A stretch of DNA of 64,000 nucleotides. Source: Hyaloraphidium curvatum SAG 235-1. Lineage: Eukaryota > Fungi > Monoblepharomycota. Position numbers and translations under genes: made by a program. Within the stretch, counting starts at the first letter, position 1, and the number at the start of each line of letters is the position of its first letter. Below, in pieces: positions 5,376-64,000 of this stretch. The notes beneath the pieces are model-generated. The model ran no database searches. It had not been told where the DNA came from and was given only the letters and a program-made list of their open reading frames with translations. Location: NCBI GenBank assembly GCA_025558095.1, contig JAIVFI010000002.1:930001-994000 (forward strand). The letters run 5' to 3'.

Positions 5376-7992
<2,617 letters not shown>

Positions 7993-9429: not shown

Positions 9430-9538
9430 ATGCATCCAAACTTCCAAGCGACCACCGTGTGACGGTCGAGACCTCAGGGCGTATACCAAAGATGACAATC
9501 GAGACTTCAAAGCGTACACCGAAGATGACAATCGTTAC
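9430..9538. repeat. Degenerate 33-bp tandem repeat (~3 copies), intergenic
   Basis: GTGACGGTCGAGACCTCAGGGCGTATACCAAAG (9459-9491), ATGACAATCGAGACTTCAAAGCGTACACCGAAG (9492-9524), ATGACAATCG (9525-). Confidence 0.75.
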
Positions 9539-9577
9539 AGCAGCGCACGTCCGTTGTGCGATCGCGGCGCATCCAGC

Positions 9578-12511
<2,934 letters not shown>

Positions 12512-13749: not shown

Positions 13750-14685
13750 ATGGAGGACCCGTTCTATGCGGTGCGCGACGACCTCTCCGCGGCTTTGGCG
13801 GGCGCGCGCTCGCAGCTTGCGCGGTGGCGGGGGCTCGCGCGGACTGCGGGGAAGGACGCGGCGCGCGCGGCGGCCGAGCTGCGGGCGGCGCTGGCCGACA
13901 TCGACGCCGACGTGGCCGAGCTCGAGCAGGCCGTGGCGGTGGCCGCGCGGGACCCGGCGCGCTTCCGGCTGGCCGCGGCGGAGGTCGCCGGGCGGAGGGA
14001 GTTTGTCGCCGCCGCGCGCAAGGAGGCCGCCGCGCTGAGGGCCGCGCTGGCCGACGAGGAGGGCGCCGCGCAGGCTGCGCAGCGGGACATGCTGCTGGCC
14101 GGCGGCGCAAAGGGCGGCCAGGGGGCGGCAGGGGGGAGCTCCGACCGGACTGCGCGGCCCCCGCGGGCACCAAACGGGACACCGCTGCCCGCCGACGGCA
14201 GATCGCCGGCATCTCTTCCTTCCTCGGGTTCCCCCGCACCGGCGGGCTCCCCCCCTGGCCCCTCCGTGGGCGCCCCACCCCCCCGGACAAAGCCCGCCGG
14301 CGCACCCCGCCCGGGCACGCCCAGCGGCCAGGCCGGCCGCTCCTCGACCCCCGACACGGGGGACCGCCCGCGCGACCGCTTCGCCGAGAACGAGCAGATG
14401 CAGCAGCAGGTCATCATGCGCGAGCAGGACCGCGAGCTGGACCAGGTCGCGCACACGGTGCGCAACCTGCGCGAGATCGCAGTGACCATCGGCGACGAGG
14501 TCGAGGACCAGAAGGTGCTGCTGGACGACGTCGACGAGCGCGTCGACAGGACGCAGGGGAGGATGCAGCTCGCGCAGAAGCGCATGAACGCCGTGCTGGC
14601 CGAGCTGCGCAAGGGCGGGACCTGCACCATCGTGTGCCTCATCACCGTGCTGCTGATCCTGCTGGTCGTCGTGATCGTCATCTAG
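13750..14685 (+). CDS. TLG1: Qc-SNARE syntaxin-6/10 (Tlg1)
   Basis: N-terminal MEDPFYAVRDDL; SNARE motif QQQVIMREQDRELDQV...IGDEVEDQKVLLDD; C-terminal TM. Confidence 0.92.
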   Translation: MEDPFYAVRDDLSAALAGARSQLARWRGLARTAGKDAARAAAELRAALADIDADVAELEQAVAVAARDPARFRLAAAEVAGRREFVAAARKEAAALRAALADEEGAAQAAQRDMLLAGGAKGGQGAAGGSSDRTARPPRAPNGTPLPADGRSPASLPSSGSPAPAGSPPGPSVGAPPPRTKPAGAPRPGTPSGQAGRSSTPDTGDRPRDRFAENEQMQQQVIMREQDRELDQVAHTVRNLREIAVTIGDEVEDQKVLLDDVDERVDRTQGRMQLAQKRMNAVLAELRKGGTCTIVCLITVLLILLVVVIVI

Positions 14686-15319
14686 GCGTGTACTCCTCGC
14701 GGTGAAACGGAGGGGTCTCACCCCGTTGCTGCGTGTTGCTGAGCATGTGAAGCAGCATCCCTTTTCTCTTCTACAAACGCGCTCCTAGGGAGAACGCACA
14801 GTCGTTGATGAAGCGGACTAGGACATTGCAGTTTGTAGTCGAGATGCAGGCCGGCGATGCAAGGGTGGATGGGAGCCGTCTCGCTCGGTAAAGGACTTAC
14901 TACTCTAGGCCTGAGGTGCCAAGCGCGGCGGTTCGGACACACGGGAGCTGTCTCTGCGTTATTCAGACGTGCGTATCGACTGCCGGTGTGTTTTCCACGG
15001 TTGCGCCGGGGCGTTGGCTTCGGCGCCGAGCCGGGGTCGCGGGATTGCCGGGTCCGCTTTCCGGCCCCGTCGACACCCCGGCGGCACACCAACGGCGCCT
15101 TGGGAGCTCTCCTTCGTTGGTGGGCCTTGGTGGACGCGTGATGGCCGGTAGTTGCGTCCGGCGCGGCGTCACCGGCGGTGCTCCGGCCCCGGCCCGAGCT
15201 CCGGCGTTTAGATCGGCTTCGAGCGCGCTCACACGCTCCGCCCCCCGCAGGTTCTCTCGCGAGCGGCAGCAGCTTTCTTGTCAAGTACTCGTACCGCCCC
15301 CCTCGAGCTCGCCGGCAAG

Positions 15320-18300
15320 ATGCCGTCGATGCGCCGCGGGGGGCCGGGCCACGGCGCGCGGCGGCAGTACGACCCGGACGGGCGAGGGACGAAGAGCGGC
15401 AAGAGATATCTCGGCGACAAGATCAAAGAGCACTGGCAAAATGCCCAACAGGGCCTCTCGATGTTCAACGCCATTCGGACCTTTTCGGAGGGGCGACTGT
15501 TCGTGCTCGACTCCGGCGTGCTCATTGTCGACTTTTCGTGGATAGTGCATCGGGTGGCGCCCATGTTCGCTTGGGAGCTGGTTCAATTGGCTTTCGGCGA
15601 CGAGAACCTGGATCCTCTGAGCGCTGCGCAGGCCGAGGAAATCTTCACCAAGTTGGCCACGGGGCTGATGCGCGAGATCTGGAAGGCCCTGGCGCCCACG
15701 AACAGGCCGCTGCCGACGGGCTACCGGGTTGTCATCATCCACGAACTGACGGCGGAATCGGCCAAGGAACTGCTGCGCAAGGAGGGTCCGGGGGTGTCGT
15801 TGCCCGAGACAACGGCGGAGCTGGACGAGTTGCTCAGCCGCCATGGAGACTCGTGCCCGCTCCGTCCTCTTCCCTTGCTGGTTCCTGGCTATCAAGGAGG
15901 CGCAGCGGTTGCGGCGCTTGGTTCCGCCGTGCCGACGAACGGGGATGCTGCACCAGCGGAAGCCGCAAACTTCAACTTTCTGAGGAAGACCGACGTCGAA
16001 CGGGAAAGCCGGACTCGGTCTTCGGCGTCCGCGGCGTCCAAGGGCATCAAGCGCGTGCTGGTGGTTCACGGTGATGGGTTCAAGCGCACCAACAAAGTCG
16101 TCGATCCGCGGAGTAAGTGCGTCGACACGCATCTCTACACTGCGGCTGACGGGCATTGCGACAGAGCTTCCCGGTGCGCCACAGGCCGCGACAAACGTCC
16201 TTCTGTCGGACCCCATGTTCAAACTTTGCCTGTTCAGGGCGACCCAGAAGGTATTCGAGACTCCCGATATGAAGGACAAGCTGCCCGCCGTCGTCTCGCA
16301 CATTGTCGTCGGCGAGTTCGACCCGGCGGCCTTTGCCTACGGTGGGTTTCACGCCGCGACGTCGCCTGCGGTTTGGCGCCTTGTTCTGATGACTCCCGAA
16401 ACAGCGCGAAATGTCAAGGCGGAACGCGCTCCCAACGCCCGACCAACATTTGTCGGTGTCCTGACCGTCGATACCGACTTTTCCGCTTTCAACGTCGGCA
16501 GGTACATGGACGCCATGCTCGACGGCATCGGCAAGCAGAAGCGGCTCCTGCCGCTCGACAGGGTCAACCAGCTCTTTGGCGGCGGCTGCTCGCCGCTGGT
16601 CATCGCGTTCGCGGTGGCCGTCGGCGGCACCGACAACACTCTGCGTTACGGAATGGTGGGTGATGGTTTCGATGGCTTGCCGCCAAGACTGCGCTGACTT
16701 GCAGATCCAGGGTCCGAAGGCCGTGATCGACCTGCTAGACCAGCTCGGCCTTCGCAAGGACTACACGGAACGGGTGCCGGGCCAAGGCCCGCAAGAACTG
16801 CTCGACGCCCTCCCACGCGGGCCGCAGGTACCTGAAGAAGCATGTTGTCGAGTTTCTCGAGAAGGATGGGCAGGACATCGTCAAGGCCATCAATGCGTTC
16901 CAGAACCTGTCAGCAAATGGACATTGGCACCTGCCCACGCTCGAGATCGCCGCCGACCAGCTCAAACAGGATCCCTTTGCCGGCTTTGCCGGCAAGGGAA
17001 CGCTTGTCGGGGCTCATTTGGCAGCATGGGACGAGGAGCGCCACAGGCTTCGGAGGCCGAAGCTTCAACTTCGCTTCAAGGAGGTTGGTCGCTTCATTCC
17101 CCGCGATGCTGCGACTGGTCGGCCGATTTCTGACCTCGCTCGCGCAGATGAAGGACAATATAGGGAAGTTTCGTCGGGGTGAGCTGCCTCCCAAGGTCGA
17201 GCCGGATCGGGGAAACTACCCGCTCCGATGGTTGCGGGAGGTCAGGTTCAAGGCCGAGCGGCGGGAGCGGAGCGAGAAGGAGAAGAACAACAAGTACTTG
17301 AGACTTTACGGCGAGGAGAAGAAGGCCCAGGGCAAGAAGGTCGCCGCCGAGCAGGGCGTCGCCGAGCAGCAGGTCGCAGCCGAGAAGGTCGAGGTCGAGA
17401 AGTTTGAGGTCAAGACCGGCATCGAGAAGGTCGGGAACGGCAAAGAGGGCGGCGGCAGTGCGGGCCGGACGCGGGGCGACGGCGTCGCGCAGAACCCCGA
17501 CACCGGACTGTTTGAGCAGCTTTGGTTTGCAGCTTTTGCCAACCCTCATTTGCACCCCGCGCAGCCGGCGGAGAAGCTCGACGGCGACGAGGACGACGAC
17601 CGCTACGGCGACGACGTCAGTGTCACCGAAGGCGGCTCGCCTCGCTCGTCCTCTTCGGCATCTTCGTCTTCCTCCTCGCAGGCCGAGCCCCGGTTCGTGC
17701 CGAATCCCGGCGGTGTTGTTCCCCGCACCCTTTCGCAGCTGCCTCAGATCCCGGAGGAGCAAGGCATGGAGCAGCCCCGCGTGCTGACGGCGTCCCCCGA
17801 GCCGATGGAGGGCGTCGAAGAGTCCGACGTCGCGTCGTCGGCGGCGGGTTTTGGTGCGTCTGTCGCCGGAGAGAGCAAGGTGCGCTCGCCCGCTAAGCGC
17901 CTGAGCTCTGCCGGCTCCGATCTTGCTGGCGACGAGGGAGAAGGCGACGAGCACTCCGAGGGACCCGCGCCCAAGATCCGTACTCGTGGTGGCAAAGTTG
18001 CGAGCAGCGAGCGCTCCGCGTCGGTGGGCTCGGACAGAGGTTCCGGGGGGTCGAGATCCGGCGGGGACGGCTCGGACTCCGGCTCGGGTCGGGCGTCGCC
18101 GAGTTCGTCGCGGGGCAGGTCACCGGCGCCCTCGCGCAAGGGTGGTCGTGGTCGCGGTCGCGGTCGCGGTCGGGGTGCAAAGGCAGCGACTGCGGCAGGG
18201 GCTGGCCCGTCACCGGCAGCCGGCAAGGAGAAGGAGCCTGCTGCCGACCCGGCTGTTCAGCGTGCGCAGGATGTGGGGCGGGAGCTGCTGAAAGCAGTTG

Positions 18301-21300
18301 GCAAAATGTCTTTCAGGTAAGTCACGGTGCTATTCGGGAGTCATGGGAGCTGACCACGTACTAACTGCGATTGCAGCGGCCGGTTCCGCACCACGGGACC
18401 GCAGCAGGATGCGCTGTTTAGCTCCATCAAGGATGAACTGAATCAGGGGAATTACAAGAGCTTCCAGATGGTCGCCGAGGACATGGCCTGGGCCATCAAG
18501 AGCGGCGCCCGTGCGCGGGTCTTGGAGCTGGAAGAGCTGCTTGCGCGGGAGGGGTCCGAGGCAGAAATGAAAGCAGCGTGGGAGAAAGAGAAGAAGAACA
18601 TCAAGGCGGATGAGACGGTCATGATGGTGAGCTTGTCGAGGCTCGCGCTTGCGGACAGCACTGACACTTGTTCTCGTGCAGACAACCCTGCACCGAGTGT
18701 ACGACGATCTTGTCGAGCGACGTCGGCAGGCCGAGATCGAGCGTCAGGCGCCGGGCTCCAGCAGCTCGAAGAAGCCTAAGAAGAAGGGCATGGAGCACTC
18801 AGAGAACACCCTGAACAAGCGCTGCTTCTCCGCCATGAACGCGATCAAGAGCCGCCGCGGCCCAACGCTCGAGAATGCCATGAACCAGTACCGCATGACC
18901 TTCAACCGGGCGGCGAATCAAGTACTTGAAGCGCAAAAAGGTCTCTTTTACCCGGAGCTCCAGGTCGAGGCGATCTTCAACGAGGTCTTTGAGCTCATCG
19001 GGGACCAATTGGTCGGACCAGCCGAGCCCCGCCCGGCTCGCGACACGCCGGAGTGGAATGGTCGTCTCGAGGAGTTCCGTGCCGCGCTCGATGGAAGCAA
19101 TGCATTCGCTGTGTCAGGTGCTTCGTTTGTCGCCGAAGCGATCAAGACGATTGCTTCGCTGAACGTGCTCAGCCGCGCTGCGGGCCACGCGGCATTGCAG
19201 GCCGCCGCTGTGGAGGGCTCACCGGCGCTGAACCAGTTCACGGACTCCCGCTTCGGCGTGCCTGCTCCCTCTGCACCCTCTTCGCGCCCTGTGCGCGCTC
19301 GTCCTTCGAGCGGGAGTTCTGCAGACATTCCGGCTGGCGCTGGCCCGATCAAGGTCTCTTCCAAGGAGCCTTTGGCCGAGGATGACGGCGCTTTGGCTCT
19401 GTATGCGCACGCCCACCAGGCCGTCGTCACCGAGGCGCGAGCGACAGTCCAGCCAGATGATCGGACCGCCGTACAGTACAAGGCCGTGTTCAACCTGTTG
19501 AGGAGTGGACAAATTATGGAGCAAACCAGCTTCCGCCCCGGTACCAAGGAAGCGATGAAGTATTGGACCGTCTGCAGGTTCTCCCCTTTGGATCCCCCGT
19601 TCAAGCGGGAGGCCTTACTGGCCTTGGAGCCTCCGATCGAGGCGGCCGGGGCTGGACAAGAAGCGAACGCCGAGACGGTGGCCGAACAGCCGGATGAGAC
19701 GGTGGCGCCGGCCGAGCCTGCGGACGTGCCAATGGAGCCGGCGGACCCGGCCGCTCGGTTGCCCGCGGGGCAGCCGTTCCACGGCATCACGGCGGCGCAG
19801 TTCGAGGAACAGACCGCGGTAGTTCAGCCGGGCTGGAGGAAGGCGCTGGCAACCACGACCTCGACGGATCTCATCTGCACGCGAGCGCGGCCATCGAGCT
19901 CACGCAGTGGTCCTGCGTGGCGCTGGTTCCTCACCCTGACGGTAGCGGCCGCCTCCTCCTCGCGATGAAGTCGCCGCACCCCATCTTCTCCGTCTCGTCG
20001 ACCGGTGTCGCCGTTGACAGCCCACTCGTCTTTGCCGCGCAGCTCCTTTTGCCCCTGCTCCTGCGCCGCATGACCAAGCTGCGCGCTGGCGACGAGCTCT
20101 TCGACCAGCACTCGGACTGGACCGGCGGAGTCCCGCCACAACTCGCTGGCTACGCCCGCGCGGCCCTCCAGCCCGCGATCAGGCGGGCGATGGAGCTCCT
20201 CGCCGAAGGCGGCTTCGACGTCATGCTCCGCGGACGGCTGCAAGGCGATGGCCTCAACAGCGCGGCGGCGTTCGAGAAGGAGGAGGACGAGCTGTCGGCC
20301 CCACGGGTGCGCAGCTCCGTGCCGTCGTCCATGATCGCGCCCGAAACCAGCGTCAAGGCCATCGCGCCGGTGCTGGGGACGAGAACGCTCGCCACCTTCC
20401 TGGACCGCGAAATGCTGCCGGTTTCCCGCCTGCTCCCGGAACGCGTGAAGGATTCCCTGGACATCAAGGCCGACGCCGCTTTGCAAGGCCAGCTCGTTCG
20501 GATCGCGACGGAAGGCAACGACGCCAACGCCATTCCCGACAAGCTGCGCAAGAGCGCGCGTGGCTTGTTGGCGCGGACGGCGCGTGGCAAGTCGGGCAAG
20601 GCACAGGTGCTGAAGGCCGCGCGCGGGGACGGTGAAGAGGACGAGGACGGTGACCTGGACGATTCAGGGGACGAAGAAGACGACAGCGAGGAACCTGGCG
20701 AGGAGCCGGCTGCAGGAAGCGCGCTGGAGAGAGTTCGCACGTGGTCTACACGGTGGCGAGATACCATCGCCAAGCGGCAGTGGTCGGCAGCTCGCAAGGC
20801 GGCCTCGGAAGCTCTCCTTGCGGCTCTGGACACCTTGTTTGCCAACAGCACCGAGGAGGCTGATGTTCAGCTCGCTGTTTTGGACCTCTTGAACCTGGAC
20901 GACGACGTGCAAAGGCTCTTTCTATCTGGCAACTGGACGCAGGCCGCTCTCAACTCGGCCGCAACCGCAGCACGATTCGCCATCGAGACTCTACCCGAGT
21001 TTCGTGCTCTCGTTCCTGTTCCCTCGGCACGCGCAATCTCCATCCCCATCACCGGGACCCTTGCGGCGCGCCTCTTGGTCTCCTGGATCAGGACCTGCAC
21101 CTCGGAGACCAGGGTCGCGGTGGCGAAAAACTTGTCAGCAACGCTGTTCGGGATGCAGCAGCGGGGAACAGTTAAGCCCCAGGATGCGGCCGACATCAGG
21201 GCGATCATCGCGAAAATCGAGCTCGGGTCGGACATCGCCGCCACATCCTTTGCCCCTCACCTCCTCTTTGCATTCGAGGCGCTCTTTGCCGGACTTCCTC

Positions 21301-23535
21301 CTCTCGATCCGCGACCACGAGTGGTTCAACGCGGCGATCGAACTCTTCAGCTCCCTCCGCAATTGATCCCCAGGCCGTTCCTCCAGACCAACGGCTACTC
21401 AACCGTTCCTCTCGGAACCGTTCCGGCTCACCACACCGCGCGCAAGACTGGCAGCGCCGCCGTCACCAAGTATGGAGCCGAGGTCCTCGGCGTCAACTCG
21501 TCCCGCGGCGAGAACATCATCATGGTGAGCCAATTGCCTGGGCCACCTGACAGCGAGCCATCTTCTGACTTGCTGGCACCTGCAGCGCTCCCGTACGCGC
21601 CGCGATTACACTCTGCCGGAGCAACCCGCCGCCGCCGTCGACGTCGCCCCTCTCCCCGCTCAACGGGCCGGAACGGCTCAGCTGATGGACACGGAGACTA
21701 CCGACGACGCCATGAACACGGACGTGGATTTGCTCGAGGCGCCTCAGCAGGAATTCGGGGTCCAGTTGCGGCCCGACGTGGAGGACCTGGAAATGTCAGA
21801 GGCACTACGGGAGGGCTCTACCTCCGAGGAACGCCCAGCCGTGGAGCCTGCCGCCGCCGCGGAGCCTGCCGCCGCCGCGGACGGAAGTCAGCTGCGCCCT
21901 ACCTCCTCGCTGCCCTACCTGCGTGCTCTGCAGCTGCACATTGGAGGGCGTCCGGATCCTCTTCATGCCGAGGGCATCGAGCCGCTACTGCCTCGGGATG
22001 CTCCCGCTGCGGCCGCTGCTCCGCCACCGGGATCGTCGTCGGACTCTTCCCCCACGGCTCCGCCAGCCCCGATCGACGAGGACCTGATCTTCGGCCCGGA
22101 CATGAGCGACACCAGCATCGACATGCTGAGGCATCTGCTTGGCAAGTGCTCGTTCGGAGCCGGTGCCTCCCGCACCGACGGCGCCTTCCGCGGCTGCATC
22201 CCGGAGGCCGCCTTCACCGTCCACCCTGCCAACCCGGCTTTCTCGACGCAATCGTTTGTGATGAAGCAGGGCGGACCCCGCTGCTTCGTCCCGCTCATGT
22301 TCCGGACCGCGGACCCGGACTACGCCCGCTCCGTCATGCTCAACGTACCCTTTGTGTGTCTCGACGTCGGCGACAAGATCACCGCCATCTCGGTGCTCAT
22401 GGCCTACGTAAAGCCGGACGACTCGATCGGCGTCGCTATCACGCGCTTCCACGTCAAGAACACGACGGACAAGGCGAAGCACGAGTCGGCACGAGCGGCT
22501 GCCGAGGCGCAGAAGGACGACAAGTACCGCGCCGACTTCCAGTCCTACACGTCTGGCGCCGGCAAGGCCCGGACCTGGAGCAAGTTCGAGTTCGACGCGT
22601 ACACCCAGAACCTCCTCGACACAGCCGGCCCGATCTTCGACCAGTCGTACAGCCGCGAGTCGCTCAAAGCCACCGAGACCCTCAACCGCGAAAAGGACTC
22701 GCACCTATACAAGATCCTCAACGATATGCTGTTCGCGGTCGATCGCACCCAGCTCATGGTGACCCAGATCCAGGCCAGCTACGCCGCGGCGAAAGAGTGG
22801 GAGAAGCTGCAGAAGCCTGCGGCAGAGGAGCCACGGCAAGACGGGGAGCCGCAGCACTCGCCTGCCGAGGCCGAACACGCGCAGGCGGCTACGATTGCGG
22901 AGGAGCTGATGGAGGCGATGGCGCCGGAGATGGAGCGGGTGCTCGACGAGGCTGATCGCGCAGCAGGGGCAGAACAGGCGGCCGCAGAGGAGCAGGCACA
23001 GCAAGGCGGACCAGCAGCTGACGGGCAGCACGAGGAGGACAAGGAGCGCGCGCGGCGCGAGCAGCGCAACGCCTTCATCGCCGGCAAGGTCAAGGAGGCG
23101 GTCGAGAGCCTCAGGGCTGAGCTTGCCGACGGCCGCAAGGAGCACTACAACCCGATCGTGATCATCGGCGACGGCGGCCATGGCGGGCGAACCCCGGATC
23201 CTGACTCCCTCGCCGGGTTCCTGATGCGGCTGTTCCTCGTGATCTTGCTCATTGAGTGGGGCACTTCTCAGGTAGGCTGGAGCGTTCTGCACCTGCGTGA
23301 CTTTGGCTGACGCATCTCCCAGCGCTGCCCTTCGTGCTATTCGAAGCTGCTCCCTACGAAGGACCTCCACATCAAGGACTGTCCCTCGTGCCCCGGACAC
23401 GACGGCACCGGCATGCTTCGGGTGGAGAAGAACGTTTCCGCGACTCTCTGCTTTTATCGAATCTTTCTTCACATCCTGGCAACGGGCACGCGGCCTCCGG
23501 CCTTCCGTGACCCGACTGCCAAACTCACTACCTGA
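15320..23535 (+). CDS. Giant (~2,500 aa) multi-intron protein: N-terminal FEN1/XPG-like 5' nuclease fused to a C-terminal Fanzor/TnpB-like WED-RuvC-Zn finger module (RuvC D-E-N)
   Basis: XPG-like motifs IVDFS, VHGDG..RTNK, GEFD, LTVDTDF, GGTDN..GMIQGPK. Fanzor-like motifs FRALVPVPSARAISIPIT, FLQTNGYS, VCLDVG, IIGDGG, LIEWGTSQ|RCPSC..CPSC, VEKNVSATLC, TRPPAF. Frames joined by ~9-10 GT-AG introns; the junction near 16770-16875 is ambiguous. Confidence 0.72.
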
Positions 23536-23690
23536 CAAACGAACCAGGTACTTTAGCTGAATGCGTGAGTGCACTGTGGTCGTGCATCGTGGATAGTTTA
23601 CTCATGCGATAAGCTGTTTCGTGGAATTGGTGTTATCCTTTGCGTTTTGGTGGCGGTTCCCGGATTCCAGAGCAGCAGCATCCGTGTATT
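23536..23690 (+). ncRNA. Candidate omega-RNA (Fanzor guide scaffold)
   Basis: Immediately after the stop, AT-richer than its flanks, with nested stems: AGCT/AGCT (23555/23612), GCGTGAGT/ACTCATGC (23563/23600), GCAC/GTGC, GGAATTG/CGGTTCC (23623/23654), CGGAT/ATCCG (23661/23680). Confidence 0.35.
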
Positions 23691-52554: not shown

Positions 52555-54462
52555 ATGGCCGCTGCAACCGCCGCAGCGGCCGGCCCGGTCGCCGCCCTGG
52601 CGCAGCTGAACCCCGTGCTCCACGATGGGGGCCCGAATGAAATCACCCTCACCTACGGCTTCACCCCGCAGCAGGCGCGGCTCGGCGTCGCGCCGCCGCA
52701 GACGCCGGAGCTCGACCGGATCCGCCAGAGCCTGGACGTGATGCGGACAAACGCCACAAAGACCGTGCGGACGCTGCAGGCCAACATGGACGTGGTCGGC
52801 GAGTTCCTCAAGTCGCAGAACGCGCTGGTGCAGCCGGCATCGCCGGCCTCCGAGGCCGCACCGGGGCTTCCGGTGCCGAAAAAGATCAAGATCACGCTGC
52901 CGAATCCCGCCGTCGACAAGCTGAAGTCTGCGACTTCCAGCCGGCCGAGACTGCCGGAGGGAACGTGGGTTGTTGTGTCTCCCACGCGAGTCCGCCCCGT
53001 GCTCACGGCAACCCCGCCGCCGCAGTCCGGAACCCCTTTCTTCCTCGCAGCAGCGCCGCAAACGGCAGCACAGCGAGATGCTGGCAGAGAGCGCCCCTCG
53101 TGAGTGCTCTGCGGACTGGGGAAGACCTTGCCTGAACTTCGGTGCCAGCCAACGCCATCTACAGCATGAGGGTGGAAAACACCGTCGTGCACATCACCCA
53201 GGACAACAAGATGAAGGTGATCGTGCAGGCTCGGCCGTCCGCCGACGCTCGTTCGAAGCAGAAGAACAAGGTGCGAAGCCTCGCCTCGCGGGCAAAGCTC
53301 CCTCTGACCCTCGATCCGCAGAACAAGAGCGGCACCACCGGCGGCAGCAGCAACAACTCCTCCGTCCCCACTCCTCGCAGGCCGGAAACCCCCACCCTGG
53401 CGCCCGGCGAGGACGTCTACGGCACCGCGCAACCCACCATGCACGGCGTCCCTCTCGATGGCGACTTCACAAAGCTGTCCAAACCCCAGAACCAGATTCC
53501 CTACGACCAGTTTTGGCGTTTTGTGGACCAGTTCTGGCGCCCCCTCGTGGAGGACGACCTCGCGTGGCTGCAGAACCCCGGCGACGGGATGCAGGTCTAC
53601 GCCATCCCCCCGCTGGGCAAGCCCTTCGTGCAGCAGTGGGACGAGGAGGACCGCATCCTCATGCTCAATTCGGCCTCGGAACTGACCTCGCGGCCGGGCG
53701 AGGGCAGCGAGTTCCGGTACGAGAACGACGTGCTGGTGCCCGGGGACGCGGTCCTCGGGCCCTTCACGGAGCGGACGCTGCAGGCGCTGGTGCAGGAGGA
53801 CCTGTTGGACTCGGGTTCGGTGGCCTCGCATGCGAGCGATGCCGAGACGCTCGTGCAGCCGATTCCGGAGCACGTGCCCAGCAGGACGAAGCAGGACCTC
53901 GCGGACCTGGAGGAGCGCATCAAGATCGAGCTGCAGTACATCGACCTTGCGCCGCCACACGAGGTAACCCAGCTTGCATCGCGGTGCCCGTCCCATAGAT
54001 TTGCTGACTCCCTTTGTGCGCAGGCCTCTGCTTCGGAGGGCCAGGAGGACGAAATCACGAACCAGCTGCGGCGCGCGCAGAACCAGCTCCGGCAGCAGGT
54101 CGAGCGCAACATGCGCCTGAAATCCCGCATCCACGAGGTCGCCCTCAAGTGGCTCGCGTACCAGGAGTACCTGTCCGTCAAGGACGAGCTCGAGCGGCAG
54201 ATCCAGGACGCCTACGCGCGGCGCTTCGTGGGTACCCCTTCCGGCGCATACGCATGCACGGGCCTTACCCCCCCCGCAGCGCACCATCAAAAAGAAGAAG
54301 AAGGCGGGGGAGCGGCCGGTGACGCAGTACGTCAAGCCGCTGGTGGGCGACAACGCGGGGCTGCTGATCGCAAAGAGGCGGCAGTGGATCGAGAAGGCGG
54401 GGCCGGCGTTCGATCTCTCGCGCAAGGAGCGGCAGCCGCTCTTTTTAAATGTAGACGGGTAA
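52555..54462 (+). CDS. ADA3: Histone acetyltransferase adaptor ADA3/NGG1
   Basis: NQIPYDQFW.FVD..WRP, IPPLGK.F..QW, GPFTER.LQAL, LEERIKIEL.YI, DEI..QLR..Q.QL, QEYL.VKDELE.QI..AY.RR, KRRQWI. Confidence 0.88.
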
Positions 54463-54650
54463 TTGATGCGGCCGAGCGGCGTCTCCACGGTCCGATCGGC
54501 GCCTGTGCCTCCTTTGTTGACAGCCCGGCGTCGGCGAGTCCGCAGCAGCCGACGCTCCCCCCGACCCTCCAGGGCCCTCCCTTAGACAGGTCCACCCTGT
54601 CGACCTCCTAGGAATATTGCCAGCGGCTGACGGCGAGCGGCGGCCCGGCC

Positions 54651-56289: not shown

Positions 56290-57232
56290 TCATCCGAACA
56301 TGGACTGACTGATCAGAACCAACCATCCGAGTCCAAAGTAGAAGAGGACCATGGGGTAGACCGCGAGCGCCCTGCGCTTCTCGAGGCGGACATCGCCGAG
56401 AAAACCAACCGAAGCTGTCGACGAGCATAAGTACGGCGGGATCGCAGGCAGTTTCCAACGAAAGAGCCCCACCGTAGGCGGCCCAGAAGAACGCGATGCC
56501 GACAATGACGCCGCGGATAATGATACTGGGGAGGAAGAGGGAGAAGAGAGAGGCGATAACGAGGGGGAAGATGCAGTAGCCGAGGACGCAGACGGATTGG
56601 AAGAAGGAGCTATACGCCAGGGGAGTCAAGAGTCAACAGATTGCACGACCGAGCGAAGGCCCGCGAACCAACATTCGGCCCCCGAGGAGCTGGGAATTGA
56701 GCGTGACCACGGCCGCGCCGCACCACACGATCACGAAGATGCTGGTGAAAACGAGAGCGGACTGGTCCTCAGGCGCCGTGACTCCCAGCCGTCTGCGGTG
56801 TTCGCGTCAGCGACAGCCAACCCCGGCCGAACCCGGGAAACCAACATTGCCAGTGTCAGGCAAAGCAGCAGCGGCCCCCACAAATCCCAATCCCGCAGGA
56901 TGTTTGACCGCTCCTTTGTCGGCCAGAGCACCTGGCGCATCTTGTTCCAGACGTTGGTCAGGTCCCGCATCTGCCGCCCCGGATCAGCACATGCCACGCC
57001 GCCGATTCGAGCACATTGATCCCACGATTGTCGTAGATACGGGTTCGTCCAGCGTGTCCAGGTCCGAGCGCACGACGCGCGAGGTCGAAGGGTCGTTCAT
57101 TGAGCCCGAAACGCCGATTGCGGCATGGCTGCCCGTGGACAGGCTCAGGTCGTCCGGCCGCAGCGGCGACGACGTCGCCAGCGGCTGTATCAGCGGCGCA
57201 CTGTCGCCCGGCATGGAGCCGTAGCCCGCCAT
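56290..57232 (-). CDS. YIP4: Yip1-domain protein (YIP4/YIPF6)
   Basis: DTLDEPVSTTI|MRDL, LRDWDLWGPLLLCL.LA, SFFQSVCVLGYCIFPL, RRALAVYP..LFY. Confidence 0.9.
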
Positions 57233-57492: not shown

Positions 57493-59589
57493 ATGTCGGT
57501 ACCGCCGCGACTTATTGCGCCACCGCCGGTCGACGGCCGCGAGGCGGACTATGGTCCCGACGAACGCGGTGAGCTGCTGATGCACGTCTCGTCGACCCTG
57601 GCGCTTCAGCGCACGGAACTCTCTTCCTGGTACACGGAGGACGACGAGCCGCGGCCGCCGGGGCTGCTCTTTGAGGCTCTGGGCAGCAGCAGCACCCAGG
57701 ACCCGCCGTGCGTCAAAGACTTCGACGCTTTCGCGAAACGGACCGTGGGAGCGATCTGCGATGGCGTTGGGGCAGATTCCACCGAACGCCGGCGTGCTCT
57801 CGATTCTGTGATCCGCTTCCAACCCTTTGACGTTTCTGGGGGCTCTGTCCTTCGGCCTTTGGACGAGGCGCACAAGAAGCACTTGTTGTCGTCGGTGCTC
57901 CTTGTTCTGCTCCTGACGGGCCGCTACGATGCGCGTGCGCGGGTCATGCTGCGTCGCCTCGCGGCTGCTATAGGCTCGGACCAAGGCATCGATGCTGCGG
58001 AGCGGTCCGTTGCGGCAGCTTTGGTGGACAACAGCAGGCTCGGCGACCCCGAAGCGGCCAAAGCACCCCTGGCCGAAATGGCGAGGAAAAACAAGCTCGC
58101 GCGGGTTTTCGGTGTCGGAGCTGCCACCGTTGCGGGCGGCCTGCTCATTGGCCTTACGGGAGGTCTCGCTGCTCCTCTGATCGGGGCCGGCTTGGCGGCT
58201 GCTGCTGGAGCCATCGGCCTCGGCGGGACTGCGCTCGCGGCAGGCATTGCAGCCGTAGCCGGAAACGCGGCTTTGATTGGCTCCATCTTTGGCTCGTATG
58301 GTGCAGCGGTGTCTAGCGAGGCCGTGGCCAACCGGATGAAGGACGTCGAGGATTTTGCCATTGTCGACTTATCTGGCGCAAAGCCCGGCGAGAGCAACAA
58401 GGACGAGGAGGAGCGTCCGGCAGCCAGAGCCTTGCACGCCACCATCTGCGTGTCGGGTTGGCTCATGGAGCCGGGCGACGCTGTGGATCCATGGCGTGTG
58501 CTCGGAGACACCGAAGGCGATGTTTTTGCCCTCCGTTGGGAGGAAAAGGCGCTCATGGATGTCGGCGCCGGCTTGGCGGGAATCGTCAAGCGTCTGGGGG
58601 GAAGAATGGTTGTGACCCAGGTGCTCCAGCAGACGGCGCTTGCGACGTTGACCATGGCTTTGTGGCCTCTCGCGCTCCTCAATGCCGGTTCGCTGATCGA
58701 CAATCCCTGGTTGAACGGCATGAGCCTCGCAGAGAAGGCGGGCAAAGTCCTGGCCGAGGTGCTCCTTGCTCGTGCTCAGGGGCAGCGGCCTGTCTCGCTA
58801 GTGGGCGCGAGTCTCGGTGCAACCGTCGTCTTCGAATGCCTCCTTGAGCTGGACCGCCGTGGCGGGTTCGGAATTGTGGAAAATGCCTTCTTGCTTGGTG
58901 CCCCAGTATCCTCGGCTCCGGAGCGTTGGATGCGCGCACGGCGCGTCGTCGCTGGGCGCATGGTGAACGCCTACTCCAAGAACGATTGGGTCTTGGCCTT
59001 CTGTTACCGAACTTTGAACTTCAAGCTCGGTGTGGCCGGACTCGGACCCGTTGCTGGCGTCGAGGGGGTCGAGAATGTGGATCTGAGTGCGGACGTGACG
59101 GCGCACACCGTTTACCGCTTTCCCGGGCTGCTGTTGCGTCAGTGCGGGTTCGGTTCCCTCGTGGAGGACGAGGTGCAGCACCAGAAGCTCGAGGCGAAAG
59201 AAGAGATGGAGGCCGAGGAAGCGCTCCGGATCCAGGAGCTCGAGCTGGAAGGGACGCTCGAGGGCGATGTGGCCTACTCGAACCTGCAGAGGCCGAACCC
59301 AGGGGAGCCGCTGCCACCGTGGATGGAGGAGCCCGGCAGCCGGAGGAACTCTTTCAATCTCGATGACCCTTGGCTAAGCCCGCACATTACCCCCGTGACC
59401 CCGAACTCGGGCAATTCGGAGGTGGTGTTCGAGGCCGGCGACGACGCTTTTGGCGAGACGAGCCCGATTGAGCTCTTCCCGCCGCCACCGCCATACTCTG
59501 AGGTTCCGAACGGGGAAGTGCAACTAAGGACGCCAGACTCATCCGCAGCAAAAGGGGCGAAGGAAGATATCGGGCAAGCATCTAGATGA
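57493..59589 (+). CDS. DUF726/TMCO4-family alpha/beta-hydrolase-like membrane protein
   Basis: GRYDARARV, GGLLIGLTGGLAAPLI, LIDNPW, QGQRPVSLVGASLGA, VVAGRMVNAYS.NDWVL. Confidence 0.9.
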   Translation: MSVPPRLIAPPPVDGREADYGPDERGELLMHVSSTLALQRTELSSWYTEDDEPRPPGLLFEALGSSSTQDPPCVKDFDAFAKRTVGAICDGVGADSTERRRALDSVIRFQPFDVSGGSVLRPLDEAHKKHLLSSVLLVLLLTGRYDARARVMLRRLAAAIGSDQGIDAAERSVAAALVDNSRLGDPEAAKAPLAEMARKNKLARVFGVGAATVAGGLLIGLTGGLAAPLIGAGLAAAAGAIGLGGTALAAGIAAVAGNAALIGSIFGSYGAAVSSEAVANRMKDVEDFAIVDLSGAKPGESNKDEEERPAARALHATICVSGWLMEPGDAVDPWRVLGDTEGDVFALRWEEKALMDVGAGLAGIVKRLGGRMVVTQVLQQTALATLTMALWPLALLNAGSLIDNPWLNGMSLAEKAGKVLAEVLLARAQGQRPVSLVGASLGATVVFECLLELDRRGGFGIVENAFLLGAPVSSAPERWMRARRVVAGRMVNAYSKNDWVLAFCYRTLNFKLGVAGLGPVAGVEGVENVDLSADVTAHTVYRFPGLLLRQCGFGSLVEDEVQHQKLEAKEEMEAEEALRIQELELEGTLEGDVAYSNLQRPNPGEPLPPWMEEPGSRRNSFNLDDPWLSPHITPVTPNSGNSEVVFEAGDDAFGETSPIELFPPPPPYSEVPNGEVQLRTPDSSAAKGAKEDIGQASR

Positions 59590-60673: not shown

Positions 60674-62002
60674 CTAGAGATTCGACGACAGGAACTTGTC
60701 GTCCAACGTTCGGTACGGGCACTCCACCACCTGAAGTCCCTCCTCTGGCGTAAGAATCCTGGCTGTCCGTGCTCTTGCCGGATCGGAAGCTTCCACGACG
60801 TCGCCCACAATCCAGCACGGCCAACCTTCAATCTGCTCAATCTCCTTCTTGAAGGCGGCCGCGCGGTCGCGCGGGAGCGTAAACAAAAGTCCACCACTGG
60901 TTTCCGCGCTTCTGCCCAGCAGAAGCCTGTACGGCACCCTCGCGTCCACCAGCTGCGTCTTCGCTATCACTGGCAAAGTGTGGAGGACAAACTCGACCGG
61001 CAGGGTCTGGTTGGACGCCAAATTGCCCGCGTGGCCGAGGATACCGAAACCCGTGACGTCCGTCGCCGCCCGCGCACCGTACTTGCGCATGAGTTCAGCG
61101 CCGACCTTGTTCAGCCGGGACATTGAGAGGATGCTCGTCTCGTACGCCAGCCGGGCCTCTTCCCGCGTGATCACGTCCTCGACGCGGCCAAACTTTGCGG
61201 CGGATTCGGGACCATGGAGCCAGACATTCAGGTTGGAGCAGACCTGCGTGCCGAGAGGTTTGGTGAGGATGAGGACGTCGCCGGGTTGAGCACCGGTTGG
61301 TCTGGGGAGCATGTTAGCATCGAATGGCGGGCCGCCGGCATCAGTGCCCACTTGATGATTTCCTGGTCACGGGCGACCGTGGAAGCGACACCGCCGACGA
61401 TGAACCCTACGAGTGGTTGGCGCGGTCAGACTCGGTTGTCATGTTCGCTTGTCAGACAACCCACAAGGGCTCATGACCGATTGACCGCCCGTGACTTTGG
61501 TGCCGGCTCGCTGAGCTTGGACGCCAAAGCCCTTCATCATGAGCTCCGTGGCCCGCCAGCGGTCCGAGTCTGGCATGGCCTTGTCCCGGCAAACTCCGAG
61601 GATCATGAGCATGTTGTCGCAGTCCGGAAGGCCCATCGCGTAGATATCGGAGAGCACGTTGGCGCACGCCACCATTCCCTGCCAGAAGGGCGAATCGATG
61701 TTGGGGTAGAAGAAGTCCGTCGTCTGGACGAGTGCGAGGTCGGGGAAACGCGGAAGAGGGGTAATGGACGAGTCCATGAGGAGCAGCGGGGCGGCCGCCT
61801 CCGCGGTCTTCCCCGATGCGTCGGCAGCAAGGGCGCCTGCCGACGCGGCCGGCCCGTTCAGGGCCTCCAGCAGGCGGTACAGATCCGCCTGCTGGACCTT
61901 GCAGCCTCAGCCCTTGAGCTCGGCCCACTCCACGAGCCGGAACCCGCGCGTCATGCCCTCGCGTTCCGCATCAAAGCGCAGCGGGTGCTCCGTGTGCCAC
62001 AT
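60674..62002 (-). CDS. SEPHS2: Selenophosphate synthetase (SelD/SPS2), selenoprotein with Sec at codon 32
   Basis: FRLVEWAELKG-TGA-GCKVQQ (TGA at 61909-61907), LVQTTDFFYP, ANVLSDIYAMG, GGQSVMSP|WFIVGGVA, GDVLILTKPLGTQ, ATDVTGFGILGH, ETSGGLL; introns 61407-61464 and 61302-61351. Confidence 0.95.
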
Positions 62003-62098
62003 CGTTGCAACTGTCAGGCGGCACCGCCCGCCGCGCTGCCGCGCTTCCAACCCCTTGACACGGAGCATCCGCGTCCCTCCTCGGCGAGCGGCGACGCG

Positions 62099-64000
62099 AT
62101 GTCTGCGCTATCATCTCCCGAAGAAACAGAAGCGCCACTGGTGGAGCGGTGCTCGGTATCGCCGGCGCCGCCGAGCCCCGTGCCGACGGAGGATGCCGTC
62201 CGGAACGCCGAAGTCTTGAAACTCATAAGAACTTTCTTCCGCATGCCGCTGCGGAGTGACAGCGAGGAGGACTTCTTTGCACTGGGCCGGCACATCGTTC
62301 GGACGCTGCGGAAGTACATGAACTGCGACCGTGCCTCCCTCCTCATCGCGGACACCGAGTCCGGCATCTTCAAGCCCACCTTCTGGGACTGGAACGGCCT
62401 CGAAGTGCCGGCGATACAGAAGCTGCACGAGGCAGAAATCAGGGAGCTGGCGTTGCCGCTTCGTAAGGGCATCGCTGGAGATGCCCTGTCGAAGAACGCG
62501 ATACAGGTCTGCGACGACGCGCAGGAGGATCCCCGGTTCTTCAAGGAGGTGGACATCCGGTTCCAGTACAAGATCCGCTCCATCATGTCGGTCCCTCTTG
62601 GTTCGGTGGCGGTATTGAACCTATACAACAAGCTCTGCCCGGATACGGGAGACATTCTCATCTTCTCTGCTGACGACCGAGAGGTGATCGGAGTGAGTAC
62701 ACCGCAACAGGCGGACCACGGAATACACGGCAGAAACTAATTCCCGTGTGTCGCAGACCTTCCGCGACCTCCTTGGTGTGCTCCTCGAAAGGGCCGTCCT
62801 GCAGCGCCAGGTGGCGCAAACGGAGATGAAGCTCAAGATTACTCTGGACGTTTTGTCCTACCGAATCGGAGTATCGGACGCGTTGATCGCCTCCTTCATC
62901 AAGGACTGGACTCCGTACGTCGAGCAGGATCCGCACCCGATCGACGATTACGCCTGGGACCCGCAGCACCGCGACGACGACGAGTGCGTCGCGGCGTTCG
63001 TGCGGATGGTCTACTCCCTGGGCTACGTGGAGAAGTTCAAGATCTCTCACGAGAAGCTCGTGCGGTTCGGGCTCACGGTGGCCCGCAACTACCGCGAGAA
63101 GTCGGACGTACAGTACCACAACCTCGGACATGCCACCGCCGTAACGCACGGCATGTACATGCTCGCCAAACGCTACGGCCTGAGGAAGCTGTTTAAGGAC
63201 GACTTGGAAGTCTTTTCGCTTGTGCTCGCTTGCTTCTGCCACGACTTGGATCACCGGGGGCTTTCAAACGCGTACCTCAAAACAACAAACAGCTTTCTCT
63301 CGGGTTATTTCAGCCACTCCATCATGTAAGTCCGCTTCCCCTGTTTTCGCGGCGCGAATTCGAAGGGTGCCTAATCGCGCTACCTTGGCTCGGTCCTTTC
63401 TTTCCTACCACAGGGAAGAGCATCATGCGAACTTTGCGGTCTCAATTCGTTGGGTTGCTGCACTTTGCACCCGCCTCTACATGCTAAACCGCGCGCTCCG
63501 ACAGTGACGGCGCCCGACTGCGACATCCTCGAGAACCTCTCCGTGGAAGACTTCAAGCACGTCCTCCACATGACGCGCGCCAACATAATCTCGACCGATC
63601 TGAGCGTCTTCTTTTCGCGCAAGGCGCAGTTGACGGAGCTCATCACGACCGGGACTCTCGACATCGACCATGACAAGCCTCAGGTGCGTTCCCGTCCGGA
63701 ACGAATCCTCTGTGCTCACTCTTGTCCTCACCCCAGCGGCGCATGATCCGGGGTCTTTTGATGAACTGCTGCGATCTGATGGCGATGACCAAGCCGTTCC
63801 TGACCGTCATCCGCGTCGTCGACGTCATCTTCAAGGAGTTCTTCACCGAAGGCGACAAGACCAAGAGCCAGGGCCTGGCGCCGAGCTCGGAGCTCATGGA
63901 CCGCGACAAGGAGCACGCGATCCCGAAGATGCAGGTCGGCTTCATGTCAGGTGTGGTGATCCCCGCGTACGAGCTCATGGCCAGCCCCAACGTCCTGCCG
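62099..64000 (+). CDS. GAF-domain class I cyclic nucleotide phosphodiesterase; runs off the window end
   Basis: GAF: CDRASL, KGIAG, DAQEDPRF..EVD....YKIRSIMSVP, LYNK. PDE: YHNLGHA, CFCHDLDHRG.SN, EEHH, IISTDL, CCDL, EFFTEGD, QVGF. Confidence 0.92.

Follow-up and report, generated by a model that had tools for sequence, protein, structure and literature searches.

A stretch of 64,000 nucleotides from the genome of the fungus Hyaloraphidium curvatum SAG 235-1 (contig JAIVFI010000002.1, positions 930,001 to 994,000; hereafter the window) was found to carry, on its forward strand at 14780-23670, a broken but transcribed copy of a mobile element of about 10 kb. At the level of the family, this element has one long reading frame whose predicted protein appears to join a PIN domain with an H3TH-like hairpin, of the kind found in FEN1 and XPG, and a UDG-like region to the WED, RuvC and zinc-finger parts of a Fanzor1. 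The interpretation that this is a Fanzor1-type element of that composition, and that its own protein drives its spread, is one to which we give an even chance of being correct. The family is unusual and is undescribed as a fusion; its insertion anatomy is already known from the Fanzor1 elements of Chlamydomonas.

Results

The right (3') end of the element was present at five places in the genome searched (31.9 Mb, with the window on its contig C2), and five copies of the element were thereby identified. Comparison of these copies indicated that the window copy shares the common 3' end and is approximately 80 bp short of the family 5' end. It is bounded by an exact 10-bp target-site duplication (14751-14760 and 23674-23683; all element features are on the plus strand), the 3' member of which would occupy the guide position, and a C/T-rich filler that is absent at that place in the other copies follows the 5' duplication (14761-14779). 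The chance of such a 10-mer repeat was approximately 10 in 20,000, and the duplications of the five copies measured 16, 14, 17, 8 and 10 bp. The locus, described in an earlier note on this DNA, is a dispersed element copy with target duplications and not a stand-alone gene; a domesticated single-copy gene was ruled out by the multiple copies together with these duplications.

Copy C13 was full-length, with the 16-bp duplication, and carried two deletions within RuvC and a frame shift of 1 bp; copy C30 had lost its N-terminal part, and C11 and C6 were short derivatives. The 5' ends in the window subfamily were variably truncated and adjoined C/T-rich filler. All long copies retained their introns, which ruled out retroposition of a spliced mRNA, and with regard to the other traits of non-long-terminal-repeat retroelements, no reverse transcriptase was detected in the Pfam scans and no A tail was seen. 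Identity to C13 alternated in blocks of 70-100% and fell exactly at the first frameshift of the window copy; this mosaicism suggests template switching. The 3' flanks of sister copies were slightly more alike than expected by chance (p = 0.026, with borders set by hand).

In sibling elements, the C/T tracts at the 5' junction reached 175 nt. Pure tracts of 40-175 nt stood directly after the 5' duplication at L047:5666-5840 (copy C31), L044:1145, L011:474 and L054:3496, which suggests a strongly base-biased synthesis that uses no template. Tracts of 22-63 nt for which no link to elements was found were located at 56528-56553 of the window (minus strand), L014:9401, L013:3836 and L050:6245-6266, and within 255 kb four of the ten tracts of at least 22 nt lay away from elements; these may be a signature of host repair. 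Short contigs from a freshwater poly(A) metatranscriptome were 90-100% like the element at window positions 19892-20064, 20301-20489 and 21158-21295, and the family may be present in wild populations.

RNA contigs of run X1, which was recognised as RNA because spliced GT-AG joints were seen in its contigs, were aligned to window positions 16050-21950. Seven GT-AG introns were observed (16113-16164, 16342-16404, 16656-16710, 17084-17147, 18317-18376, 18627-18681 and 21525-21585); a further canonical intron at 23272-23322, outside the aligned stretch, is predicted. The intron at 16342-16404 is in-frame, sits between the GEFD and TVDTD motifs and coincided exactly with an alignment gap relative to the sibling proteins, and removal of that at 16656-16710 turned the motif previously read as GMIQGPK into GMGPK. 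RNA depth was present in all 30 bins.

The exons of the window copy summed to 7,755 nt. With the confirmed introns removed, the spliced frame ended at a stop at 17180 after 542 aa, and two frameshifting deletions were evident relative to C13, one of 2 bp at 16813/16814 and one of 949 bp at 19854; the single protein of about 2,500 aa that had been assigned to the locus is therefore not encoded there. The 949-bp segment is coding sequence in C13, with one in-frame intron of 63 nt. An RNA contig covered 16710-16888 ungapped and with no mismatch to the window, so the 2-bp lesion is real and transcribed and an assembly error at 16814 is unlikely; the 949-bp lesion also appears to be transcribed, as residual RNA depth was equal on either side of it. 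That introns account for the changes of frame at about 16800 and 19850 was rejected, since the first was crossed ungapped by the RNA contig and both are deletions relative to C13. The window copy cannot make the fused protein; its maximal output could at most be a 542-aa PIN-only protein plus a 3' RNA. Two public gene models, KAI9033344.1 (P0004) and KAI9024031.1 (P0005), use the wrong exon-2 acceptor, lose the reading frame given by the RNA joints from exon 2 onwards and stop at 447 and 544 aa; protein searches miss the family because these models are out of frame. Profile, database and fold searches were run on single exons or homolog proteins, and the joined spliced protein was used only to count its length and locate its first stop.

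At the family level, the proposed fusion of a FEN1/XPG-type nuclease with a Fanzor in one reading frame was supported, but it is not intact in the window copy. C13 remained in frame across both break points, and the ratio of nonsynonymous to synonymous substitution (dN/dS) between copies was 0.24-0.49 in all nine gene segments, values that showed purifying selection along the whole gene as judged from these alignments. The intact family protein would be about 2,970 aa, a figure obtained arithmetically by adding back the lost lengths. A profile search of the genome with the RuvC region yielded three further divergent subfamilies, in whose long copies the order was PIN N-region, PIN I-region, UDG-like region and Fanzor module, and five of whose seven copies had duplications of 11-17 bp. 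Because the indels in coding sequence that separate the siblings C31 and C8:331k add up to an in-frame change, intact sibling copies probably exist.

No more than two relatives were found beyond the genome. One of these lies on a contig of other origin that repeats the arrangement from the UDG-like region to the Fanzor half; as this contig ends short of any PIN region, the PIN-Fanzor fusion was seen in the H. curvatum genome only. Protein-database searches returned only the organism's own gene model or P0003, and metagenome scans gave nothing useful. In agreement with the earlier note, which knew of no such architecture, no description of a Fanzor with XPG, FEN1 or a glycosylase, or of a Fanzor in Hyaloraphidium, was found in the literature covered, subscription papers and Repbase being beyond its scope. 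By eye, repeats that look ubiquitin-like and end in RLRGG or RLPGG precede the PIN region in sibling subfamilies (L042:5100-5950, L044:5200-6050 and L048:4900-5620), the window subfamily having none, and the C5 copy carries a tandem duplication within its RuvC-II exon (L051:3717-4523).

The N-terminal exons carry seven acidic residues in the order of FEN1. D15530 and E15743 lie in the PIN N-region of exon 1 (15320-16112), as placed by alignment with the three divergent subfamilies and weakly by hhalign; E16314-x-D16320 lies in the PIN I-region of exon 2 (16165-16341), as defined by the RNA joints and the subfamily alignment; and D16470-x-D16476 and D16632, the latter in GTDN, lie in exon 3 (16405-16655), where hhalign and ESM Atlas results were added to the RNA joints and alignment. 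An H3TH-like hairpin follows in exon 4 (16711-17083), ahead of the 2-bp deletion, both features being drawn from the RNA and the comparison with C13. Six of the acidic positions were invariant across the four subfamilies, and the seventh is Asp in the window subfamily and His in its siblings. The second site had been assigned to the Asp of HGDG (16073); this DG is conserved too, but lies farther downstream, and E15743 (in IIHE) is the more likely residue because in every subfamily it aligned with a Glu that is conserved within a beta-strand.

When compared with host FEN1, EXO1, XPG and GEN1 by hhalign, the motifs were in register but the matches were weak (E = 0.03 for exon 3 and 0.08 for exon 1). 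For exons 2-3 the nearest ESM Atlas entries were unnamed eukaryotic clusters of mollusc and arthropod proteins (0.93-0.94), and the nearest named clusters were XPG_I, Pox_G5 and 5_3_exonuc_N (0.81), with a low recognition score that makes them a lead only. An AlphaFold model of the PIN I-region was unusable, with a predicted local distance difference test score (pLDDT) of 36. Conserved acidic motifs and language-model features, rather than a fold, thus point with moderate confidence to a FEN-like PIN domain.

In exon 5 (17148-18316), defined by RNA and the C13 comparison, the window copy has the out-of-frame stop at 17180 and is 269 bp shorter than C13; the family frame here encodes a basic segment and a low-complexity linker. 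Exon 6 (18377-18626; RNA joints) encodes an unassigned helical region that by eye weakly resembles the start of locus L021. Exon 7 (18682-21524) contains an unassigned region, the 949-bp deletion, the C-terminal half of the UDG-like region (PHP at approximately 19930) and a REC/WED-like part, as judged from motifs and from C13. The UDG-like region, which was absent from the earlier reading, was recognised on a motif basis from a strand-G-helix arrangement plus the PHP pattern; half of it is deleted in the window copy.

The remaining two exons were delineated by motifs and comparison with homologs. Exon 8 (21586-23271) encodes the end of the WED-like part, the RuvC-I residue D22363, a helical part with an acidic insertion, the RuvC-II strand and E23254, and exon 9 (23323-23535), preceded by the predicted intron, encodes a C4 zinc finger, the RuvC-III helix with N23431 and the stop codon. 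The Fanzor1 motif D-X(125,275)-[TS]-[TS]-X-X-C4 zinc finger is present in the window copy, with a D-to-TS spacing of 300 aa owing to the acidic insertion of about 100 aa; homologs P0001 and P0003 are within range. The RuvC-II Glu stands six residues before the zinc finger (E23254-W-G-T-S-Q-R-C) and was invariant in the homolog alignment, a shifted position that defines Fanzors (PMC13565253). The CxxC pairs begin at 23326 and 23380, and N23431 lies in EKNVSA. Every homolog has KN at the third RuvC residue instead of the RD of the Bao and Jurka motif. The idea that this change from Asp to Asn had inactivated the RuvC domain was rejected, since GtFz1 is active with Asn as its third RuvC residue and D606N raises the activity of SpuFz1 (PMC11423790); by analogy, the D-E-N triad is compatible with activity. 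Most relatives carry a DPG signature, which is DVG in the window subfamily. The motifs named in the earlier note (D15530, D16073, E16314/D16320, D16470/D16476, D16632, D22363, the CxxC pairs and EKNVSA) were all found at the places given for them.

A model of homolog P0003 (pLDDT 61) returned only Fanzor and Cas12 structures among its top seven Foldseek matches, with SpuFz first and a weak best E of 0.011; its VIA scores were also weak (Z = 4.3 in the comparison with SpuFz and 5.1 in that with a Cas12). A wide structure search was dominated by helices, and an ESM Atlas search of the RuvC exon was uninformative. Sibling exons matched PF07282 below the cut-off (E = 0.0045 and 0.021). The structural expectation raised for the two halves was thus weakly supported for the C-terminal homolog, whereas a PIN fold was not confirmed. 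On motif and Foldseek rank, the module is likely, not proven, to be Fanzor1-like.

A candidate omega-RNA region (23530-23670) was identified from conservation and folding. It comprises a hairpin over the stop codon (23530-23549), a long hairpin (approximately 23555-23615), a donor-like GTGAGT at 23565 and an AG at the element end. Sequence around the stop was conserved across subfamilies, and the first hairpin had two compensatory pairs that amount in effect to one event between two lineages; the second folded well in the window subfamily (a hand-picked 64-mer gave z = -3.3). The region had no Rfam match. A splice-donor-like site was present within about 30 nt after the stop in all 12 copies and both outside relatives (window 23565, L020:2023 and L021:6275), and most elements end in AG, so that the 3' terminus looks as if it were an intron, as predicted from these signals.

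The insertion lies 65 bp beyond the end of an intronless syntaxin 6/10-type SNARE gene (13750-14685; PF09177, PF05739), and a multi-PAS protein (PAS_9, PAS, PAS_3) is encoded on the minus strand at 9507-12410. Ordinary host genes elsewhere in the window encode a DEAD-box helicase (5580-7025), Ada3 (53142-54611), a DUF726 protein (57493-59589) and a GAF-domain protein (61214-62740).

Discussion

From a constant 3' end combined with 5' truncation, long duplications and fillers, we infer that copying begins at the element 3' end, off a target 3'-OH and with an intron-containing template. The element would be copied into staggered breaks formed or processed, most likely, by the protein that it encodes. 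A downstream-side 3'-OH would act as primer, and a DNA donor would be copied starting at the element 3' end, often via AG or G microhomology; synthesis would stop early, gain an untemplated purine-rich tail and be joined upstream. The Fanzor could use an omega RNA derived from the 3' tail to home to matching and occasionally near-matching sites, and the PIN domain could trim flaps or incise opened DNA. The element's own protein is favoured as the driver because none of the exons contained a recognised transposase and no other element has the same left end.

A bolder form of this proposal, which we think unlikely, is a new, transposase-free class of eukaryotic element in which the RNA-guided Fanzor opens the target and the fused XPG-like nuclease cuts both strands at the bubble edges, the 14-17-nt stagger equalling the guide length and the duplications. 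Given the known polarity of XPG, incision at either edge of a 14-17-nt bubble would produce a stagger of the size observed, although applying this to the present element is speculation. The free 3' end would then prime copying of the element, and a conserved spliceosomal intron at the 3' terminus may serve to release the omega RNA or to join it to its guide.

Several results weigh against the interpretation of a self-driven Fanzor1 fusion. No significant match was obtained for the PIN region in Pfam or PDB, for the UDG-like region in Pfam, NCBIfam, PHROG or PDB, or for the RuvC part among hidden Markov models or structures (Pfam, NCBIfam, PHROGs, PDB), and about 700 aa of the middle of the protein, which have no domain assignment, could hide a transposase. 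No single RNA piece covered the length of the gene. No target-adjacent motif (TAM) or other motif was shared upstream of the duplications across the copies compared. The short 5' overhangs left by SpuFz1 cuts (PMC10432273) do not fit a 14-17-nt stagger, and the same anatomy of truncation and duplication occurs in Chlamydomonas Fanzor1 Helitron2 elements with no reported fused nuclease (PMC3627910).

The last point leads to the alternative that this is a Helitron2-like element that is not autonomous and depends for its movement on a host-encoded RepHel acting in trans, with the fused protein serving only in retention (homing), as proposed for other Fanzors; we consider this unlikely. The element ends GTAG and CCAG resemble the CTRR of Helitrons, between the two ends there is a weak, imperfect inverted repeat (95 of 2,000 shuffles), and three matches to the Helitron Rep domain (PF14214) are present in the genome (G000:C2:541600, C35:92638 and C8:491059). 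The elements CRe-1, CRe-2 and CRe-3, which belong to Helitron2, match in truncation, in duplications of 7-19 bp and in additional 5' sequence (PMC3627910). However, no Rep match was found in any element copy, the left end is family-specific, its 820 bp matching no other element in a comparison that did not read the three Rep loci directly, and the 3' patterns matched these elements exclusively. Full-length C13 also has its 16-bp duplication, whereas full-length CRe copies have none.

Passive capture, in which host double-strand-break repair inserts element DNA at unrelated breaks and the protein is not the driver, would accommodate the C/T tracts away from elements, the absence of a TAM and the mosaic identity of the copies; the constancy of the 3' end across twelve copies from four subfamilies is hard to fit with it, as is the purifying selection, and it seems to us improbable. 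That the domain calls are wrong, or that the two halves are two genes, is in our view very improbable. The want of significant profile or structure matches, the poor PIN model and the short public gene models speak for such an error, but those models are out of frame relative to the RNA joints, the C13 frame is continuous and RNA depth extends over all bins, and the invariant acidic residues in FEN1 order, the Fanzor motif spacing and the weak PF07282 matches agree with the assignments made.

In existing descriptions, Fanzors are small accessories of transposons that either encode a transposase or borrow one. The present elements, in which a Fanzor1 is joined to a 5'-nuclease-like domain, long duplications are left and no transposase was recognised, make it possible to test directly if a Fanzor can power its own dispersal, and the fusion could explain long duplications that were reported in 2013 with no mechanism. 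If true, RNA-guided, break-primed insertion of 10-kb DNA would be of interest to genome engineers; the apparently intact sibling copies, and not the window copy, are the relevant members for testing the family.

The PIN region resembles the 5' nucleases FEN1, XPG, EXO1 and GEN1 in how D, E, ExD, DxD and GxD are ordered and spaced and in the H3TH-like hairpin. It differs from them in falling below Pfam detection, in having Glu rather than Asp at the second site and His at the last site in siblings, and in belonging to a mobile-element protein. Among transposon proteins, AcademX transposases are said to carry an XPG domain, a possible parallel to the PIN-like region; Academ elements combine a DDE transposase with inverted repeats and have no Fanzor.

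MCi-2, an unclassified Fanzor1 family of Mucor with duplications of 11-12 bp, shares a conserved 3' part, a variable 5' part and the lack of inverted repeats, but has a fixed target pattern and a partial Crypton recombinase, neither of which was seen here (PMC3627910). The Chlamydomonas elements CRe-1/2/3, which are Helitron2-type (Bao and Jurka 2013, PMC3627910), are alike in keeping the 3' end intact while losing 5' sequence, and in their internal deletions, variable duplications, extra sequence after the 5' duplication and multi-exon gene. In contrast to them, the H. curvatum element has no TTTT target and no Helitron-shared ends that could be found, and it has long pure C/T fillers and the fused nuclease. 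When compared to the Fanzor1 proteins SpuFz1, GtFz1 and PpFz1, the element, known here from sequence alone, differs in a length of about 2,970 rather than several hundred aa, in its N-terminal PIN-like and UDG-like regions, in having no clear terminal inverted repeats or TAM, and in the replacement of DPG by DVG in the window subfamily. It shares with them the RuvC-I Asp, the shifted RuvC-II Glu, the TS-x-x-C motif, a structured 3' tail and introns, and with GtFz1 an Asn as the third catalytic residue.

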